The notes under the pieces are model-generated. The model was not told the origin of the DNA. It ran no database searches and worked only from the letters and a program-made list of their open reading frames with translations. A stretch of 64,000 nt of DNA, from assembly GCF_021028975.2 (NCBI RefSeq), contig NC_059426.1:66340001-66404000 (forward strand), read 5' to 3'. A program made the position numbers and the translations under genes. Positions 6,101 through 58,473 of this stretch are shown here, piece by piece (the stretch's first letter is position 1; every line of letters begins with the position of its first letter). The DNA comes from Sphaerodactylus townsendi. Taxonomy: Eukaryota.

Positions 6101-9100
6101 GTGATTTCGTAGACAAAAACATGACGGACAGGTTTGAAGAAATGGGAGAATTTATAGGTATGCGAAAACTGGAGGGGAAGCTGTAGCATGCCACTGACTG
6201 AGGTGTTTGCTTGCAAGAATAGGATGTGGAAGCCACAGGTGAAGAATATTTGCTCACTGGTAAAGTTCATACAGTGTATTAATAAGGCCCTAGATTCAAT
6301 TTTTAGCAATTAAAATTAAAAGATTCTGAGGTAGCAGGGCTGGAAAAAACCATTGCCTAAAACCTTCAGTTAGAATAGACGATAGTGAGCTAGATTGTCT
6401 CAGTACAAGATGGTTTCCTACGTTCATAGCAATATATACTTAGCGAATTTTAGATGGCCTGAATGTGCCAGGATGCTGTTAAGAAATAATCGTGAGGTTG
6501 TGTGTTACTTCTAGAGTACTTTTGTGGCTGAGATGGGGATATGTTGGGGATATTGTTGTCTATGACACAGCGTTTAACTTGTATTGACAAGCATTGTGTG
6601 TTTTTGTATATTGTTGATCCTTACTCCTTGCCCAGGTCCTGGAGGGAATGCTCAAGGGAGCAGCTCATCTTCGTCCTGCTCTCCGTCTCATTGGCAATTT
6701 GCTAGATACCCGCTGTGACTCGGAGCTGTTGCATACCTTCTGCAGTGACACAGGACTGTCTCACTTCCTCTCGCAGTTAGTGGGAAGCATCTTGGAGAGC
6801 TCCAACATTCCGCTGGTAGGGAAGTGAAGTTCTCTAGAGGGTTAGTTTGCATGAAAAACTTCAATGTAAATAGCAGGCAGCTTTTTTGTATGTACATTTT
6901 TAGCTTACTTTATGGAACTATAATAAATGCAAAATATTCAAGTCTTTGTATTGTCGAAGGCTTTCACGGCCGGAATCACTGGGGTGCTGTGTGGTTTCCG
7001 GGCTGTATGGCCATGTTCTGGCAGCATTCTCTCCTGAGGTTTCGCCTGCACCTGTGGCTGGCATCTTCAGAGGATCCTCTGTTTATCAGATCCTCTGAAG
7101 ATGCCAGCCACAAATACTGGCTGAAAATACTCAAGAAGGAAAGAATGCTGCTAAAACTAAACAGCCATGCAGCCCGAGAGAAACCACTTGCTAACCCATG
7201 TCAAAGTCTTATTAAGAGGAGAGTGTAGGTCATATTATGTATGTGTGTATGTAATCATACAGTGTACTTAATTTGCTTAATTTTAGTTACAATGTTAGGA
7301 TGTTTGCAGAGTTCAGGATATTTTGTCAAGAACTGAAATTAGATGGAGCTAGCAAAAGAAGAGGAGGGTTGCATAAAGAGCCTCATCTCCTGACCACTGG
7401 TGCCTGAGCTTTTCCCAGATGCTATTTGTGGCTCTGCTAAATTTTTTTGTTCAGTCAGAAGTACTAAAAATGTAAAACTGTAATTATTAGGAAACCAAAT
7501 TCTTAAATACTAAATTTAGTGCTGTACTGGTTGTTTGCTGTAGCAGGCTTTTATCGGTTTGTGCATCTTTACAGGATATGACACAAAATTCAGCCCATTA
7601 CATTCAGAACTAGTTTCTCTTCCTCCTCCTTCCAGGGCAAATGATACCAGCAGATATCACTCCTGCTTGAGTCTTGGTTATTTCTTATGCTGCAAGCCAG
7701 TTGAAGCCACCCCACCCAATACCACACACACAATTCTACCTCTCTGTCTGCCCCATAGGAGCCCTGGTATGACACACTGCTGTTAGAGTTGATCACAGTG
7801 ATGTCGGCCTACTTTGCCAGTGATTTCAACCGAGAACAGAGTGGGAAAAAGCAAAGGTAAGTTGCCAGGTGAATGTGGTATGGAGGGGAATTATGCTAGT
7901 ATCCTGCATTAGCTGCAAGAGAAATTAAGGCAGATTGACACAGGTGGTATAGTTCCACTCTCCTGGTTAATCCTTACGCTGTTTTTTAGTCTGAGGGTTA
8001 GGCATGGAAAATGCTGTCTCTAAAAACTGATTTACACATTATGAAGTCCATACAGCAGACATGTGGACTGCTGCCAGTCATGGATCTGGGAGTTCCTTGC
8101 TGGGGACTTAATTCTCAGGTATATATGGGCCTCATTTGGACTGGGACCATGACACATGGGGAGGGTGCTTAAGCCTTCCTCCTGCACTGTTTTGGAATCT
8201 GAAATGGCCCTGGGAAGTTCCTATTTGTAGCCGTCAATAAGTTTCCCGCAGTGGGGTGAATAGTGGTTTAGTGGGAACTTTACAAGTTATGAAAACGATG
8301 TTAGGGAGGAAGCAGAAGTTTACCTCCCCGTATGCTGCAGTTCTGACCTGAACTGAGCCTGGGCATGCCTGAGAGTTTGCAATGCATGTTTAGTTGACAG
8401 CCCATGGGTCTACCATATGTGAATCAGCCCTCAATGATTGTCTGCCATTATAGAGGGACTGAGCTGGTCAAAAGATGGGAGATTTGGGATTTCTGTATTA
8501 AGCCAGCTGACAGGTAAAAAAGCTTAATTTCCAGTGTTTTAGCACACGTTTCTGTAGTTTTCAGGCATTCCACAGTTCTGCTAGTCACTTTTTAGCCTTG
8601 CTGCCCATACTGCTGGCTCAGCCCACAGATCGAGAGTTCAGGCTTCGAGAGCAAAGTCTCAAGGTAAGAGGCCATTCTCTCCTTTTTTCTGATCTATCCA
8701 ACCTTGTTCTGCTTTAGGATGTCTTCCTTACCCCCTTACTTAAGCGCCACCCTTCATTTCTTTGCTCTATACCGGTATGTGTAAACAAGTGACACTGGAA
8801 AACTCTCTGTAGCCTGATGACAACTAAACCTGGGGTTTCTGTATTGCCTTCTCACAGTGATTTGTCCTGGGTCCTCAGTTTGTAGTAATGTAAGAGCCAA
8901 ACAAGACTTTAGGGACATTTGGAGAACAGTATAGAATAATGATATAGGCATTGGTTTAGAAATATTTGCTAAGGAGATAACCTTTAATAATTTACCAGGA
9001 CACTTGAAAGCTCTATGCATATATATATATGAAGAAGATAGAGGTCCTTTCAGTTTCTCACTGCAACGTTGGTTGTTCAGTCCCTAAATTTTTTAATTAC

Positions 9101-24149: not shown

Positions 24150-24275
24150 CAGGGGTCTGCAGCCTGTGGCTTTCCAGATATTTATGGACTACAAATCCCA
24201 TCAGCCCCTGTCAGCATGGCCAATTGGGATTTGTAGCCCACAAACATCTGGAGAGCCACAGGTTGCAGACCCCTG
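24150..24275. mobile_element. Short hAT MITE
   Basis: TIR CAGGGGTCTGCA / TGCAGACCCCTG; TSD GTCTGAAG / GTCTAAAG; core similar to the 18210 element. Confidence 0.85.
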
Positions 24276-42700: not shown

Positions 42701-44528
42701 CAAAATGTTCTGACTGGTCTTTCCTGTTCCAGGTCACCAATGAAAGGATGTCTCTACACAAGACAGTCTAGTACAGCCTTTGACCATTCCAGAAAATCAT
42801 GCTAGCTTCATCATAATCAAGGAATCTCATCATTGATCTTTTTATATCAGATTGCCTAACTGCTTTATACACTCTAACCATGAACAAGACCTCTCCACAT
42901 TCTCAAATGCTCATTCATGTGCAACAATTTTCTGGTTTTATATACACTGCATAGTTTCACCTGCAGTAGTGTCTTACTTCCAGGGGCTTCCATCATTTCT
43001 CCATAAATTTATCTCTCACTTGCAGCTACTACTTTCAACTTCAAATACCACGGCACTCCACCAGGTGGGAAATTCCACCCCACCCCCACAATGGAATTGC
43101 TCCCACCATAATTTCTGCTGATGAAAAGGGATGGGGAAAGTCTTCTATTTAAAAAGGCTGAGCTGTTGATCATGAGATTCACATAGAAAAAAGCCTTGTG
43201 GGAGGGTGGTGGGTAGTAAGGAGAATTAAGCCCCACTGGATCTATTTCCATCGTTCCGCCACTTGCCCATTTTCTACAATACATTACAATTCAAAACATA
43301 TTTCCAAACATCTCAGGATGATGCATTTTTCCCACCCACTGAAATATGTGAACAATGTGCTGCACTACCCCATTCATTAGTTTCAACAGACTTAGGCTGG
43401 GGTAACTCTATCAGATTGTACTGCAAAACTCTCAGAGTGTCTGATTTGGAGGTCAGAGACATGAGTTCAAATCCTAGCTCTGGAATGAAGTCTGCTGGGC
43501 AGGATAGCAACTTATTACTTCTCACAGCTGACCTATCTCACTGCAATGGTGTGAAGACAATGGTAGGGAGCGGGACACACAACCCTCCTGGTATGCTACC
43601 CAGAGTACCCTGGTGAAGAAGCAAAGCTCATGTATGATAAATAAACTTTAATTACACAGGACTGTTTGTTCCAAAGTGAAGAATAGCCAATCCAGTACAC
43701 AAAGAACATATTTCTTGTTTCAGAGGTTAGCTAAGTTTTTGGTTCAGCAACCTTAGCTGTGATCCTCAGATGCACAGCCCCAAGCTCAATTTCACATCAC
43801 TTGTTGCCAGCTTTCCCTTCTGTTCCCTGAGATCTCCTCTCCATCGGAGGAAAAATATATTCAGCATGTTCATGGATATTTCCTCATAAGTCCCACCTAT
43901 CTCAATTAGACTCAAGGAAGCACACAGAACAACGTAGTTTTACATTCCTAGGTAAAGTACAAGTCCCAGCCGCAAATACGTAATACATCCGCAAATACAT
44001 AAATACATAATAAATACGTAATACGAGTCACTATTACGTTTGCAGTTGCTTGAATGCCAGAGATCCTTTGCAGCATGTTTCTTCTTATCACAGCAGAGTC
44101 TGCTAGCTAACAAAGCCCACATCAGCACCGCCAGGAGCACCACGACGGATTCCCTTGCCATCGGGACCAGCCCCTGCCTGCCCCCCACCCCCTTCCAGGA
44201 CTGAGGGCTCTCATAAGACCACCGAGGCCTGCTTGACAACCACCACCCACCGCAGATCTCCCCCTCCATCATCTGCCTGCTCTCACCACAGCGCAACTCC
44301 CAGCGCGACGGCCCCGGCCAGGCTCTGCGGCGGCCTCTCCCAGACCAGCAGTCGCTGCACGGCAGCCAACGACGCCTCCCAGCCCCTCAGGCGTCGCCTC
44401 AGGTGGCCGGCCAACGCCAAGACCTCCTGCTCCTCCTCCTCCTCCGCTTCTACTCCGCAGCCACCGGGCCCGGCCGCCGCCGCCTCCTCCCCTGTCACCG
44501 GGACACCCGAACTGCCGCCGCTCGCCAT
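27750..44528 (-). CDS. RETREG2: Reticulophagy regulator 2 (FAM134A), ER-phagy receptor, complete, 9 exons
   Basis: Exons (minus strand): 44528-44287, 36804-36698, 33288-33258, 32709(or 32715)-32580, 31475-31391, 30686-30549, 30302-30208, 29952-29817, 28417-27750 (TAG). About 543 aa. Reticulon-homology motifs [40 protein letters not shown]; [22 protein letters not shown]; acidic tail with LIR motif DDFELL at 27861-27878. Confidence 0.96.
28785..28985 (+). mobile_element. tRNA-derived CORE-type SINE
   Basis: GGGTTCAAATT B-box and CCTACCTCACAGGGTTGTT...GATAAAATGG core. Confidence 0.65.
32985..33170 (+). mobile_element. CORE-type SINE, 5'-truncated
   Basis: CCTACCTCACAGGATTGTTGTT...GATAAAATGG core and A-rich tail. 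Confidence 0.6.
36169..36253. mobile_element. Short, internally deleted hAT MITE
   Basis: TIR CAGAGGTGT / ACACCTCTG; perfect TSD GTATAGAA. Confidence 0.85.
37000..37880 (-). mobile_element. LINE (L2/CR1 group) ORF2 3' fragment, decayed
   Basis: Minus-strand translation [20 protein letters not shown]...LLVIPG resembles the L2 ORF2 C-terminus, with a (TAAA)-like tail near 37000. Confidence 0.65.
39011..39118. mobile_element. Short hAT MITE
   Basis: TIR CAGGGGTGTCCAACTCT / AGAGTTGGACACCCATG; TSD CGCTAGAG / CACTAGAG. Confidence 0.85.
40166..40557. mobile_element. Non-autonomous hAT element
   Basis: TIRs CAGTGGTGGGATCCA / TGGATCCCACCTCTG; perfect TSD GGCATATG (40158-40165, 40558-40565); CpGs retained internally. 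Confidence 0.9.
43430..43645 (+). mobile_element. Degenerate CORE-type SINE
   Basis: GAGTTCAAATCC B-box, degraded core and ATAAATAAA tail. Confidence 0.5.
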
Positions 44529-44800
44529 CGCCTCAGCCAGCGATCAGGGACGGGGGGAGGGGGAGGAGGAGAAAGGAGCCCTGACAGCCGCGACCGGAAG
44601 AAGCCGCGCACCAACCTGCGCGTTCAGCCGAATCACGTGCGCTCCCCCAGCACGTGAAAAATGACGTAAGGCTCACTACGTCACCTGGTGTCTCTGGGTG
44701 CCTGTCGCGAGCGCAGGGGGAGACTTCCGCTCTTCGCATATTGGACGGTAGCAGTTGATCGACTGCCCTTACAAAAGGGGTTTCAAATCACACCCGGCCG
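44100..44800 (-). promoter_or_regulatory. RETREG2 CpG island and core promoter
   Basis: CpG-rich region over exon 1. CCGGAAG 44594-44600, CACGTG at 44634 and 44651, TGACGTAA 44662-44669, TACGTCA 44677-44683, TCGCGA near 44705. Confidence 0.75.
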
Positions 44801-45139: not shown

Positions 45140-45343
45140 GATACCAACTCCCACTTGGGAAGTGCCTGAAGATTTGGGAGTGGAACCTGAGGAATATGGG
45201 GTTTGGAGAGGGAAGAGACCTCATCAAGGTATAATGTCAGAGTCTACCCTCCAAAGTTATCCAAGAGAACTGTTCTCTGTCAACTGGAGATTGGTTGTAG
45301 TACCAGGAGATCTCCAACCCCCACCAGGAGGCTGGCAACCCTA
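45140..45343. mobile_element. Degenerate MITE with TAGGGTTGCCA-type end
   Basis: Ends TGGCAACCCTA. Related fragments at about 44920-45010 (inverted) and 50230-50420. Confidence 0.5.
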
Positions 45344-46712
45344 AAAAGGACATGTGTATTTTTAAAATCTAATGACACAAAGAAAGGGTGCTTTTGCAAT
45401 ACGCTGCCTACAATTATTTTGTTATGTGAGCACATGAATGTACCCATATGCATATTTGTGGTTCCAGTTATGCATTTGTGACACCTCAGAAGCCAAGAGT
45501 CTTACAGTGCCATCCAAAGCACAGTTGCATCCTTGTAAGTCTAATGGGCTTAAATGGATGTAACTCTGCTTAGGATGGCAGTTAGTGTGGCATAAACTTC
45601 TTGTGTCAGTTTAGATCTGTACAAGGCAATGTACAGTTTCAAATGGAGAGGGCCTTGGGTGGATCAAGTCATCCTCCAAGCAGCCTTCCTGCAGAAGGCC
45701 TTGCTTAGCAGGGCATAGGTGGAGAGTTGCAGATATGAATGTTCAAGGGATGAAGGGCTTCGTATGTACCTTGAACTGAGCTTGGGAATGGATGGGCAGC
45801 CAACGGAGTGACTGCAGAATATATATAATATGCAAACTCTGCTTAATTCCTGATAACTGAGCTGTGGCATTCTATACCAACTGGTGTCTCCAAGCTGATT
45901 TCAAGGGGAGATCTATGTAAAGTGCATAACAGTAACCTAATCTCAGTGTTACTGCAACACAGAACCAGGTGGTCTAGTCTGGTTAAGTTTATGCAGGATG
46001 CCATCTTCTAGATTAAACTGGAAAAAGATGTTCCTTCTCTTTCTTATTTAAATCCCATCAAAAATAGGAAGTGCAATGTTGTTTAAGGTCCCAGGCTTGT
46101 CAACCAGCACCACTTCCGTCTTGTCTAAGTTCACTTTCAACTAGTTTGCTTTCCACCATTTAACCACAGCCACTAATCACATTCAAAATGATTAAAAATG
46201 GCTAAAAGTTTCTTTCCAACTCGTTCAATCTATACATATATTTCAGGGGAGAGGACTGGTCTATTCCTACAGTGGAACTAGGAGTGGTAGTGACTCTAGG
46301 GGTCAGCAACCTTTAACACCCAAAGAGCCATTGGGACCCGTTTTCCACGGAAAAGAAAACACTTGGAGCCGCAAATACTTTTTGACATTTAAAATGAAGA
46401 TAACACTGTATATATTGTTTTTTTACCTTTATGCTTTGTATAAAACAATTATAGTGTGTTGCTTATGAAATCCATGAAGTGCTACAGAGAAAATTATATT
46501 TTATTTATGTAAAGGACACATTTTGAACTTTTAAAAAATAGCAAAAAACACGTTGAGTTGAAGGTCTCTTTCAAATCTTTATATCGCTTTTGGGTTTTCG
46601 AAGCGTGTAGCGGAGACTTGACCTGAAATTTAAAAATAAATTTTAAAAAAAACACTATACGCAATGAAAAAAATATTTGCAAAATATCTGCATAAATATT
46701 TATTTTACCTGG

Positions 46713-48693
46713 CTAATGGGACTTCTGCTCCTGAACCTCAGCACACAGCGTTTGCAAATCGGGGCTGTACGAAGTCACTTTCACCTTTAAGCAGGACTGT
46801 AAGCTGTCATCTGTGAGATGTGAGCGGTGCTTGTTTTTAACATAGTTCATGGTGGAGAATAGCTGCTCACATGCGTATGTGGTTCCGAAGATCGACAGGA
46901 CTCCAAATGCATATTTCTTCATGTTTATGTATGTGTCGGGAATGGCATTCCATGTTTCAAACACTAGTTTGTCTGGTCTTGGAAGGTTCTCAATATCACT
47001 CCATTTGTGATTCTGAACAAGAGTGGCCTTCTGATGGGCAACATCTTCAAGATCCTCTGTCAAGCGTTTGAATTTGGACACCCACATATCTTTGTCAGCT
47101 ATGTCAGCCAGCTCCAGCTCCAGCTCCGGGTGACTTACACCTGCAAATGCAGTCACATTTAACAGGGATGGATCGATGGTCAGGGGGGGGTGATAGGGGA
47201 AAGGCGACAACGTGGTTTTCCCTGTCTGAACTCACTGAATCGATTTCCCCAAACGATGAAACTTGCATTGTGGTGATTGCATGACTGCAACATCTCTGAA
47301 TTTATCACCTTGTAGCCAACGAGCTTGTTTGTACTCCCTTAAAGAGGGGAAGTGAGACAGTGTGCCCTCTCTGCTAAAATCTCTGAATAAAACTGGTCCA
47401 GTTTGCAAGCTCAAATGCTAACAACACCTCCTCCAGGCATGTTGTAGTGCCTGTGCCTCCTCTCCCCTGAAGAGTTGTATTCCAGCATGTTCAGGTTCGC
47501 TGTCATGTCCACCACTTGAAGTGCAGCTTTTCCAGCCACTCCTAGTTGGTTCCCAGCTCTCAGGAAGGTAAGCCCTTTGCTGCTGCAGGAAAATTTTCAC
47601 CTCTCCCAGAACCATGCTTTTAACAAAGTGCCGTTTCCAACACCTCTCCTTTCGGACAGCCAATCCACGGACTCTGTTTATGCAGCAGGAGATCCAAGAG
47701 TATGTGCTGTCACACCATCAATGCATCAGTAACGAACGGAACTTTGACAGTGATTTAAACCTTTTGCAATTATTTCATTGATTATCTGAATGACAACATT
47801 CATGACCTCTCTATTGTGCATTCTGGAGGGAAAAGTTTGCGCAAGCACAATGCCTCTTGGTGCAGGATGCAATGAAACGTCAGCAGCTTTCTATCCAGTG
47901 ACTTCTGCAGCAAGGCCACAAATCCCCTGTGCGCTCCAGACATACTCGGTGCCCCATCGGTAGCCACTGACACTAGGTGGGTTGTGTTTATTCCTTTGGC
48001 TTTTAAACAATCAAGCACAGCCTCACAGATGTCTTCCCCCTGTGTCTGGCCTTTTAGTGGTATCAGCTCAACCATTTCTTCCTGTGGTCCAGCAGAGTTC
48101 ACATATCGGCAGAACAAAGCTATTTGTTCAATGTCACTATTGTCTTTGGACTCATCACAGGCGATTGAGTATGCTGCAGCTGAATTGATGTCTTTAATTT
48201 GATGTTTTGTGATATTTTCTGCCATTTTTATGGTTCTTTCTTTTACAGTCTTCATAGAGAGAGGCATCTCTCTGATTTTCTGCACAATTTCTCTCTTGTT
48301 TTTAAAGTCCGCGAATAGGTGTTCTGATATCTTAATGAATGACTCTTTCATAAATTCTCCATCTGTGAACGGCTTCCCATGCCTGACTATCTCCTGAGTG
48401 GCCACAAAACTTGCATACGTAGTTGAATTTGCAGACTTCATCCTCAGATCAGCCTTCTGCATCAGTTCCGAAACAGCTTTTTTTCTCTCTTCTCCCTCCG
48501 GATATTTTCCAGCAAAGGCTGTGTGTTTACATTGGAAATGTCTTGCGACATTTGACCTTTTATTGTTAGCCAGTCTCTCTCCACAAATTAGGCATACTGG
48601 TAGGCCACTCTCATCAGAGGTAAATGCAAATGAATCTCTCCAGGCATCATTAAATGTTCTATTTTCTTCAGATATTTTTCTTTTCTTACATTT
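46713..48693 (-). pseudogene. hAT transposase (GTF2IRD2-like), frameshifted in its middle third as given
   Basis: ORF 48747-47800 has a KKRK basic motif, BED-type zinc finger (CLIC...RHFQCKH), first D (SIACDES), second D (VATDGAPSM) and CxxH (HCILH). ORF 47210-46713 has the hATC dimerization region with the catalytic E (GTTYACEQLFSTM). Many indels between about 47220 and 47850. Confidence 0.88.
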
Positions 48694-49125
48694 CTGCAAG
48701 AGGGAAGAGCAGGAGCAGTCAACAGGTTTGCCCAACTGTGCTGGCATCCAAACCCACCCCCCAGAATGGAGGTGCGGAAAGGCTGGGGAGAGGGGGATCC
48801 TGCTTTTATCTCACTCATCCTCCCCATCATTTTTCTGCACTCAGGAGCATGCAAAATGACATCTATTTTGTAAATAGGAACATACATGAGAATAGAGGTG
48901 GGGAAAGGCTGGGGGGGGGGGGAGCAATCCCAGTTTTATTTTCACACAGAGATCCACAGCAATCCTCCCCATGTTTTCATGCACTCAGGACTGCGTCCAA
49001 AATGAAATATATGTTGCAAAAATGGATATAATGAAAGAGCCGGGGTGGGGGGTTGAAAGGGAGAGACAAGCCAGGCGCTCCTCCTCCCTCGCTTGGCCAC
49101 AATGCCCCCCACCCCACCCCAATAC

Positions 49126-49299
49126 CTTCAGTGTGATGTAATCAGGCTTCCACTCAGGCCTCAGCCGGCTGAGCAGCTCCAAGGCCCCCCGTCGGGCCCC
49201 CGCCCCTCCGCCGCCGCCCGAAGGGTCCCTCTCGCTGACCACGATGTCCAGCTTGGGCACCTCAGGAGAGCCGGGCGGCACATGGATGTAGTTGGCCAT
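49126..49299 (-). CDS. ETNK1: Orphan copy of ethanolamine kinase 1 first coding exon (58 aa) inside the transposon
   Basis: MANYIHVPPGSPEVPKLDIVVSERDP...GALELLSRLRPEWKPDYITLK matches the vertebrate ETNK1 N-terminus as I recall it (MANYIHVPPGSPEVPKL...GALSLLQHLRPHW...VTLQ). Kozak context GTCGCCATGG; ends AAG|GTATTG. I found no downstream ETNK1 exons in the window. Confidence 0.85.
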
Positions 49300-49566
49300 G
49301 GCGACGCGGGGTGTATGTGTCTCTTTAACGGTCGGTGGCGCGAGGGGGGTGGGAGGGTACCGCCCCGCGAAAGGCGCAGCCAGCGAGTGAAGCGCGCGCC
49401 AGACGTTCAGCATAGCAGACCTTCCGGCACAGATAATAAGAGAAGCCGTGGAGGGAGGGGAGGAGCCGAGTAGGGAAACCTGATCAAAACAGCGGAGAGC
49501 CAAAGCCTCACGAGCCAACGGGAGCGCGCGAGGCCCCAGGAAGGGGCAGCCACGCCGGGGGCCGCG
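49300..49566 (-). promoter_or_regulatory. GC/CpG-rich promoter and 5'UTR-like segment captured with the ETNK1 exon
   Basis: Very CpG-dense, ETS core (CCGGAAG on minus strand near 49421-49427), directly upstream of the ETNK1 ATG and running up to the TIR. Confidence 0.6.
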
Positions 49567-50780
49567 GGTTGCCGACCCCTAGACTAACTAACAACTATAA
49601 TGGAATAAAAGAGTGAACTTCTGCATGTATGTTCTAGACAGGAAGGCCTATTTTCTTGCCATGATTACGACGACAGGCTGGCTCACATATGCATGATTGA
49701 TCATTCAATATATTGTAAATTGCATGTGTGCATGGGCTATCACAGATGGAACTTCTGTATTACACTTAAACACAACTGTTGTCAGATGGAATCAGTTAAC
49801 ATATTCAGACCTAGAAATCAAGTGCTGAGAAATCTGGTAAAGCACAGGTAAGCAAGACCAAAATTGCATTCCAGACAACTATTTTATTTAACTACGTTCT
49901 CTGATACAGGAATTTTTGTTAATAGTCGAGGCAAATTCTCTTACTAAAGTCCTGGTTTTATTCCCGTTCCCAAGAACTTGTGTGTCCATTCTGATCTCCC
50001 TCACCAGCCAGTGTGTGCAACTGTTGATTTCAGACAGAACTCACACCTATCTTCTTACTCCTCCCTTTCCCCCTTACACCGAGATTTATTCTAGAGAACT
50101 CATGATAAAACTCACAAGCCTTGAGTCCACCCTTGCCTCCCTATAAGATTTCCCAGGACGATTTTCTTCACATAATTATCTGAAGAAGCAAGCTCTGACT
50201 CACTAAAGCTCATATGGAAATAAAGTGCTACCAACTCCAGACTGGAAAATTCTAGGCGAGTTGGGGGTGCAGCCTAGGAAGGGACGTGTTTGGGGAGGGG
50301 AGGCGTCTCAGGTACAATGACATGGAGTTCATCGTTTAAAGAAGCCATTTTATCCAGGAACTGATCGAGAACAGGTGTGATTCCAGGGGATCTTCATGCT
50401 CTTCCCGGAGATTAGCCAGGTTAGCTCGCAGTCTTCAAGGTATCACTGGACTTTCCCGTTCATTTCTTCCAGTCCAGCGATACTTCCGCCTTGCGAATTT
50501 AAGTGCTGAACGTAATGACGCACTCCAAACAACTCATAAACAGCCGGTTTATCTCAGTCGGGTTAGGTGGAAGAGGCGGGAGCGGAAAGACCCGCCTCCT
50601 CGCCCGTCCCAGGAAGGGGAAGGCGAGAAGCCTCTTTGGGCCTTCCATTTTCTTTGGCGGCATCCGAACCCGTAAGGGGGGGTACTTTGATATCTGGGCG
50701 CCGCCTAACCCAAGGCAGAGGCAGCCGGAGCCGGGAAAGGCGCATTCCAAGCTCCGAACCCGCCTCGTGGAACCAGCAGG

Positions 50781-58473
<7,693 letters not shown>

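Follow-up and report, generated by a model that had tools for sequence, protein, structure and literature searches.

A captured ETNK1 promoter region and first exon within a hAT transposon of a dwarf gecko: a candidate in-frame host-transposase chimera

Can a cut-and-paste transposon carry a host promoter, start codon and splice donor between its own ends, ahead of its transposase? This question is raised by a locus in the dwarf gecko Sphaerodactylus townsendi, within a stretch of 64,000 nucleotides (nt) of contig NC_059426.1 (NCBI RefSeq assembly GCF_021028975.2, positions 66,340,001 to 66,404,000 of the forward strand), which we call the window and number from its first letter. A preliminary description of this DNA, made from its letters alone, had proposed that the element on the minus strand at 46297-49581 is a hAT transposon that uses a captured promoter and first exon of the ethanolamine kinase 1 gene, ETNK1. 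It had listed, between one pair of 15-bp terminal repeats, a CpG-rich segment, a Kozak start with a 174-nt exon, a 432-nt intron with its acceptor, an uninterrupted transposase and a polyadenylation hexamer after the stop. We found the capture of the ETNK1 piece and its ectopic insertion to be highly probable. The whole package, comprising the capture, the replaced leader, the ectopic unit and the inferred promoter use with in-frame fusion, is the reading that we favour, at a little better than even. The listed features were all read again as described, except for the uninterrupted transposase.

The element is delimited by terminal inverted repeats (TIRs) of 15 bp, TAGGGGTC[G/A]GCAACC, which are complementary at 14 of 15 positions. 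The 5' TIR (TAGGGGTCGGCAACC) lies at 49581-49567 and the 3' TIR at 46297-46311; these and all other features of the element are given on the minus strand. A scan for the TIR with 2 mismatches allowed returned 3 matches against 0.24 expected. The TIR ends agree with the ends of L003 and L004, two related elements from an ENA assembly with 83-85% nucleotide identity. Inside the TIRs, the retained canonical hAT 5' subterminal sequence (49500-49566, inner limit approximate, read depth ~100x) aligns with the 5' ends of L003/L004, and the 3' subterminal region (46312-46580) aligns with their 3' ends. The AATAAA polyadenylation-type hexamer was read directly at 46704-46699, after the transposase stop.

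The transposase is encoded in two open parts. The N-terminal part (47803-48693; 297 open codons) contains a BED-like zinc finger and a DUF4371/RNase-H-like part, and the C-terminal part with its stop (46713-47210; 165 open codons at 47210-46716, stop at 46715-46713) contains the hAT dimerisation domain. Pfam matches to zf-C2H2_12, a Spin-doc/BED-like zinc finger (28.1 bits, cut-off 27.3), and to Dimer_Tnp_hAT (27.7 bits, cut-off 21.4) passed their cut-offs, while matches to DUF4371 and zf-BED were under theirs. The N-terminal part had 171 homologues, and Pfam FAM200/ZBED5 RNase-like families are precomputed on homologues. Their names include GTF2IRD2-like, SCAN domain-containing 3-like, FAM200B and ZBED5/8-like. 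The best of them, at 80-83% identity, came from a stingray, frogs and teleosts. Transposase domains, TIRs and the presence or absence of the insertion between lineages all agree with hAT membership; by these features the element is classed as a hAT superfamily DNA transposon of a GTF2IRD2/FAM200/ZBED5-like clade. Within the homologue set, proteins P0001-P0026 show 70-83% protein identity and come from a stingray, discoglossid and pelobatid frogs, teleosts and a turtle. Identity far exceeds host divergence, which suggests that the transposase family may have spread horizontally.

To see what the host piece replaced, the element can be read against L003 and L004. Their 5' parts follow the order TIR, ~60-80 bp of GC-rich subterminal sequence, ~200 bp of AT-rich leader and ATG GAG AAA TGT AAG AAA, with no intron, and the proteins of relatives start MEKCKKRK or MDKxKKRK. 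Homology of L003/L004 to the main body in the window extends only from 48698 to the 3' TIR. At the position of their start the window reads TTG CAG AAA TGT. The TTGCAG at 48694-48699, where the L003/L004 alignment begins, is what is left of the ATG GAG of the element itself, which has thus lost its native start; the acceptor AG sits at the former second codon. What the window retains of the canonical 5' terminus is the TIR plus roughly 50-80 bp, and ~0.75-0.8 kb of ETNK1 5' DNA stands between this terminus and transposase codon 3. As aligned, the comparison shows that the host piece took the place of the relatives' AT-rich 5' untranslated region (UTR) of roughly 215-260 bp.

The captured piece begins with an ETNK1-derived CpG-island promoter and 5' UTR at 49300-49499, whose left breakpoint lies somewhere in 49400-49500. 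A block within it, 49398-49361, is conserved with sequence upstream of ETNK1 in Gekko kuhli and in a snake. The segment 49300-49526 has a GC content of 0.63 and a CpG observed/expected ratio (o/e) of 1.07, against a window mean of 0.23; the ratio is 0.62 in the ETNK1 exon and 0.33-0.44 in the transposase body. The copy of ETNK1 coding exon 1 follows at 49126-49299. It opens with the ATG at 49299 in the context GCCATGG, runs for 58 open codons (174 nt) and ends AAG/GTATTG, the slash marking the exon border. The 58 residues are 79-86% identical to squamate ETNK1 N-termini, and in a search with the lizard ETNK1 N-terminal region all named matches were ethanolamine kinase 1, in agreement with the proposed origin of the exon.

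The proposal had also held that the donor travels with the exon. In a nucleotide alignment the exon-1 donor is AAG/GTAACG in Gekko kuhli, AAG/GTAAAG in the snake and AAG/GTATTG here. Predicted ETNK1 products of several species diverge or enter the intron directly after TLK/TLQ. Based on these donors and predictions, the captured exon ends at the natural ETNK1 exon-1 donor. Past the donor, ETNK1 homology persists for ~80 nt of intron 1 and ceases near 49043. On its alignments, then, the exon is identified as ETNK1 exon 1 with its natural donor. The ETNK1 kinase domain starts at residue 60 of protein P0124, and the captured exon therefore encodes the leader before the kinase domain only; the exon itself had no Pfam match.

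The host piece lies away from ETNK1. The element sits between a CNPPD1-like gene and RETREG2, which are divergently oriented. RETREG2/FAM134A-like exon 1 was found at 44528-44286 on the minus strand, 1.8 kb downstream of the element and on the same strand, within a CpG island (44200-44750) that comprises promoter and exon 1. This exon has 81 codons and shares 85% identity with a protein of Gekko kuhli in which the RETREG reticulon-homology domain is present. In the Gekko kuhli locus (L005), a cyclin-domain gene, inferred to be CNPPD1-like, lies on the other side of the RETREG2-upstream region. L005 is collinear with the window from 50855 down to 33660, and between window positions 49597 and 46018 it has only ~225 bp. 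The junction alignment showed flank reaching right up to the TIRs, so that L005 2531-2756 represents the empty site, without 46297-49581. No further ETNK1 exons were found in the 64-kb window by tblastn with five queries, one of them the titi-monkey ETNK1 (P0136). The separate ETNK1 locus expected in the preliminary description was found in part: Gekko kuhli has ETNK1 exon 1 on a different chromosome record. Taken together, the alignments show an insertion between the CNPPD1-like and RETREG2 promoters in the dwarf-gecko lineage.

Two observations on the neighbouring genes may be added. The ETNK1 donor (phase 0) would be out of frame with RETREG2 exon 2, as RETREG2 exon 1 appears to end in phase 2. 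The region 50508-50855 is CpG-rich (o/e 0.74) and aligns with the start of the cyclin-domain gene, probably CNPPD1, in L005.

The junctions were also followed in four read runs, all of which behave as genomic DNA, with a single-copy depth of ~85 (X1), 45 (X3), 5 (X5) and 38 (X8). Contigs from three organisms enter the 5' TIR from the flank, and those joining flank, 5' TIR and CpG piece are X3 record 16 (49524-50000), X5 record 24 and X8 record 32 (~97% identity). X3 record 9 and X8 record 25 span the 3' TIR. Over 49222-49553, 48818-49040 and 48283-48488 there are contigs that match exactly. Contigs thus cross both ends of the element, which establishes its junctions as real, and organisms A, B and C, one of them ~3% diverged, have the insertion in common. 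Misassembly, which the preliminary description had named as a possible refutation, is ruled out for the TIR/ETNK1 junction by the contigs of three organisms that cross it.

Is the chimeric 5' region found at more than one locus? A derivative joint of 46540/46541 to 48720 was present in X1, X3 and X8 at about single-copy depth. Further joints from other loci, 47800 to 48926 and 46704 to 48911, lack the interior and are linked to the non-canonical 5' region, and a joint of 46406 to 49527 comes from short derivatives. The summed depth over the ETNK1 exon and intron was ~3-10 times that of the flank, with 5-10 times for the exon taken by itself and ~10-17 times at 49267/49282, sums of contig depths that are not copy numbers. 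A small family carrying the chimeric 5' region is likely, on moderate evidence, and we think it quite probable that more than one locus carries this region. The several TIR-bounded copies expected in the preliminary description are represented here by probable deletion derivatives that retain the chimeric 5' region; no second full copy was read among the contigs.

The 3' subterminal region is common to a very abundant family of miniature inverted-repeat transposable elements (MITEs), whose depth in each of the four runs is roughly 10^3-10^4 times single-copy. The MITE copies have the flank consensus GTCTAGAC ahead of CAGGGGTC, with a palindromic target nTCTAGAn, which we take to be typical of this hAT group.

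The 3' junction of the element carries 12 extra bp relative to Gekko kuhli. The segments just outside the TIRs, 46285-46296 and 49582-49593, are mutual inverted copies at 9 of 12 positions. The latter is ancestral flank, found in Gekko kuhli, and the former is the extra sequence, absent from Gekko kuhli. An extended TIR of 27 nt (85%, reaching 12 bp past the TIRs) was ruled out, since the 12 bp on the 5' side are already present in the Gekko kuhli empty site.

The transposase itself does not read through as the uninterrupted BED-DDE-hATC product that had been described: in the window the frame stops after 297 codons and reopens for 165. Insertions and substitution identity were compared along the coding region with L004 and L003 as references. 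In 47845-48699 there were 0 window-only insertions (substitution identity 0.89) and in 46713-47188 there were 2 (0.90). The garbled zone between them, 47189-47844, contained 36 window-only small insertions totalling 74 nt, within 656 bp, against 2 reference-only events, at a substitution identity of 0.88; here the frame is broken. At the 7 such places among the differences listed (47843, 47828, 47810, 47205, 47202, 47195 and 47189) the short-read contigs lack the extra letters, and the extra letter at 47843 is missing from all depth in all four runs. The best run contains just 60% of the window's sampled words, though the flanks are 99.7% identical. Against an artefact stands the bin 47544-47680, where organism A has ~single-copy depth, while organisms B and C have none.

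One-sided, tightly clustered insertions do not result from decay, whereas a consensus of few or mixed long reads can yield them. We therefore consider an assembly or consensus artefact the likely source of the frame breaks, and this transposase copy may be intact. The view that this copy is a dead fossil was dropped on the same grounds: the insertions are one-sided and clustered, the substitution identity is unchanged and the contigs omit the letters at the listed places. Outside the garbled zone, a 21-nt in-frame gap at 48443/48444 relative to both references removes a conserved 7-residue segment. Such probable local garbling of the assembly at 47189-47844 bears on any gene call in the repeats of this genome.

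Between exon and transposase lies the putative intron of 432 nt (48694-49125), which begins as ETNK1 intron 1 and continues with tandem units, a pyrimidine tract and a CAG acceptor. Three imperfect tandem units of 126-146 bp lie inside 48763-49053, the first of them overlapping the part that aligns with Gekko ETNK1 intron 1. The stretch 48699-48760, which holds the acceptor, had no match in the Gekko kuhli ETNK1 intron fragment. The pyrimidine tract and CAG stand directly before 48693, where the phase 0 frame opens on KCKKRKISEENRTF. Within the tandem units, organism C has joints stepping back 102 and 65 letters inside 48763-49053, which suggests that it differs in the number of units.

How could such an arrangement have arisen, and what would it do? 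For Ac/Ds-type and Pack-type elements, template switching in the course of abortive gap repair is an established mechanism, and it usually leaves both ends in place with the interior swapped. We propose that template switching to the ETNK1 locus during post-excision gap repair made the swap. With the element's own start gone, transcription from the captured housekeeping promoter would supply the transposase. The ETNK1 donor at 49126 would splice to the acceptor before 48693, and the transposase would thereby receive, in frame, a non-catalytic ETNK1 leader of 58 residues.

Two signs bear on whether this was used. First, 30 differences between this copy and other contigs were listed in coding parts, the list being confined to the best-supported ones; 19 were synonymous and 11 non-synonymous, and among these listed differences a synonymous share of ~25-28% is expected by chance (P about 2e-4). 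Second, the captured promoter retains a CpG o/e of 1.07, a sign of lasting hypomethylation in the germline, and the two neighbouring CpG-island promoters may contribute to this preserved CpG. The captured promoter may resist silencing, judged by its preserved CpG density only. That the element ever produced and used a spliced fusion is, from the layout of the sequence, a possibility that we put forward tentatively. It is doubtful that the chimera represents a hAT that is self-sufficient now, or was so until recently, by virtue of a captured promoter and an in-frame host exon, in a copy that is perhaps intact.

The alternative that survives best is passive cargo. Under it, the ETNK1 fragment would be a filler of gap repair that was never useful, the frame match and acceptor would be due to chance, and copies would have been moved in trans by canonical elements or simply duplicated. 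We regard this as a serious contender, though short of probable, as several observations weigh against the use of the fragment by the element. The read runs at the locus are DNA-like, and the junction from 49126 to 48693 is a prediction from the DNA layout. Sense orientation with matching phase arises ~1 in 6 times by chance. The minus strand is generally C/T-rich upstream of 48694, so the pyrimidine tract is unsurprising. The donor is non-consensus at +4 to +6 and weaker than its orthologues. The family is small, its copy number resting on the summed depths described above.

A further point against the splice is the in-frame ATG at 48745-48747 within the putative intron, which lies 18 codons before KCKKRK (open reading frame 47800-48747) and yields MPAQLGKPVDCSCSSLLQ ahead of it. 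This ATG could start the transposase without splicing. In unspliced RNA the ETNK1 ATG and other ATGs would precede it, which makes it the poorer start, but still a real alternative.

Other points touch the element more generally. The element lacks a clean 8-bp target-site duplication: the minus-strand flanks, AGTTAGTC and GAGTCACT, do not form a direct repeat, the sequence that adjoins both ends is limited to (T/G)AGTC, and the target is a CTAG-centred near-palindrome. The transposase frame in the window is broken, with a stop at 47802-47800 and many frame changes over 47844-47189, which may be real decay. The parental ETNK1 locus was seen only in Gekko kuhli and not in this genome. The synonymous bias in the ETNK1 exon (4/4) concerns four sites only, among the differences listed. 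An annotated or predicted ETNK1-transposase fusion protein was not found, a negative that is weak given length limits and the use of cluster representatives.

Passive cargo, for its part, leaves other observations poorly explained. Without the native ATG, a chimera that is to encode transposase depends on another start. Exactly at codon 3 there is an acceptor, which occurs together with the natural donor and a short intron. The CpG island has been preserved at an o/e of 1.07, and synonymous changes are in excess among the listed differences, including those in the exon.

A young domesticated fusion gene, in which the insertion is fixed, the host has kept an ETNK1-leader/transposase protein and the broken middle is an artefact, seems improbable. 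It would fit an insertion that is common to three organisms with both junctions seen, the 297 and 165 open codons on either side of the artefact-like zone, the intact CpG island and the site between two CpG-island promoters. However, as in an ordinary transposon family, both TIRs are preserved, and other loci hold related copies as well as deletion derivatives; a gene model was searched for and none was found; and the 7-residue deletion at 48443/48444 drops a conserved segment. Least of all survives the absence of any capture, that is, the true ETNK1 locus with transposon pieces or a misassembly, which is very improbable and largely refuted: it has in its favour that exon 1 is the only ETNK1 exon seen, that intron 1 of this gene might in principle be longer than the window, and that the element has a garbled part, but no more ETNK1 exons were found, RETREG2 exon 1 with its promoter lies 1.8 kb off on the same strand, the flanks match the CNPPD1-like/RETREG2 order of Gekko kuhli with an empty site and ETNK1 on another chromosome, and independent contigs link flank, 5' TIR and CpG piece in three organisms, with an exact contig over 49222-49553, so that a true ETNK1 locus was ruled out.

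How does the captured unit, taken as a host 5' module inside a transposase-encoding hAT, compare with known systems? Among vertebrate DNA transposons, the capture of host 5' modules is known mainly from bat Helitrons, and the host-transposase fusions that are known have become fixed at the loci of their host genes. In a fungal hAT with histone H3, the coding sequence reportedly rides as a separate passenger, and not as a promoter, first exon and donor driving the transposase. That element, from Pseudocercospora fijiensis and relatives (PMC6710886), is like the gecko element in that a housekeeping gene lies in a complete transposase-encoding hAT.

Bat Helitrons with host 5' modules have been described (Pritham & Feschotte 2007; Thomas et al. 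2014, PMC4224331). The NUBPL capture in HelibatN3 is like the present one in comprising promoter, 5' UTR, exon 1 and part of intron 1 (PMC4224331). The bat Helitrons are non-autonomous rolling-circle elements with hundreds to thousands of copies, in which the cargo lies apart from the element's coding sequence. In contrast, the gecko element is a cut-and-paste hAT with a transposase gene, its cargo replaces the leader and start in frame, and its family is small.

Host-transposase fusion genes generally arise by the splicing of host exons to an acceptor close ahead of the transposase reading frame, and in exon-trapped fusions the acceptor lies immediately upstream of that frame in 8 of 9 examined (Cosby et al., bioRxiv 10.1101/2020.05.07.082677). 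The gecko transposase belongs to the clade with GTF2IRD2-like names. Unlike in these fusions, the acceptor of the gecko element is absent from the ancestral element. Fusion genes such as KRABINER, SETMAR and GTF2IRD2 became fixed at the host locus itself, after insertion of a transposon into one of its introns, whereas the gecko element has host exon, promoter and donor inside its TIRs at an ectopic site. As it is ectopic and enclosed by TIRs, the published notion of a host-transposase fusion gene does not apply to it. It is like Pack-MULE and Pack-TYPE elements (PMC8903248, PMC5861414) in having host fragments between its ends, probably captured at the DNA level and amplified. However, Pack-TYPE elements are by definition non-autonomous and without transposase, while the gecko element has a transposase gene (46713-48693) and is thus not Pack-TYPE in the strict sense. 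Judged by its structure, it can be described as a transduplicated hAT, with a host fragment within its ends and the parental gene elsewhere, as seen in Gekko kuhli.

In the literature we found no description of a transposase-encoding element whose own start had given way, in frame, to the promoter, exon and donor of a host gene, and nothing relevant on ETNK1 together with transposase. Two phenomena would meet here, the capture of a host 5' module by a DNA transposon and the host-transposase fusion. If the splice is true, this would be a route by which a transposon comes to be expressed broadly, in the manner of a CpG-island gene, and perhaps resists silencing. For new fusion genes it would provide a ready-made intermediate, with the fusion carried in a mobile unit and not fixed at a host locus.

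Several repeats in the surroundings were also observed. One repeat occurs on each side of the element, at 45155-45343 and 50231-50366, and forms a tandem array of ~290-bp units in L005 8600-9700, just upstream of Gekko kuhli RETREG2. At 24150-24275 lies a 126-bp palindromic hAT MITE with ends CAGGGGTCTGCA[G/A]CC, which are similar to the TIRs of the hAT element described above. A fold-back repeat is present in two copies, 6947-7128 and 51161-51387, which are 85-92% identical; in the second, 51190-51387 contains a 93-nt inverted repeat with 97% complementarity and a 12-nt spacer.

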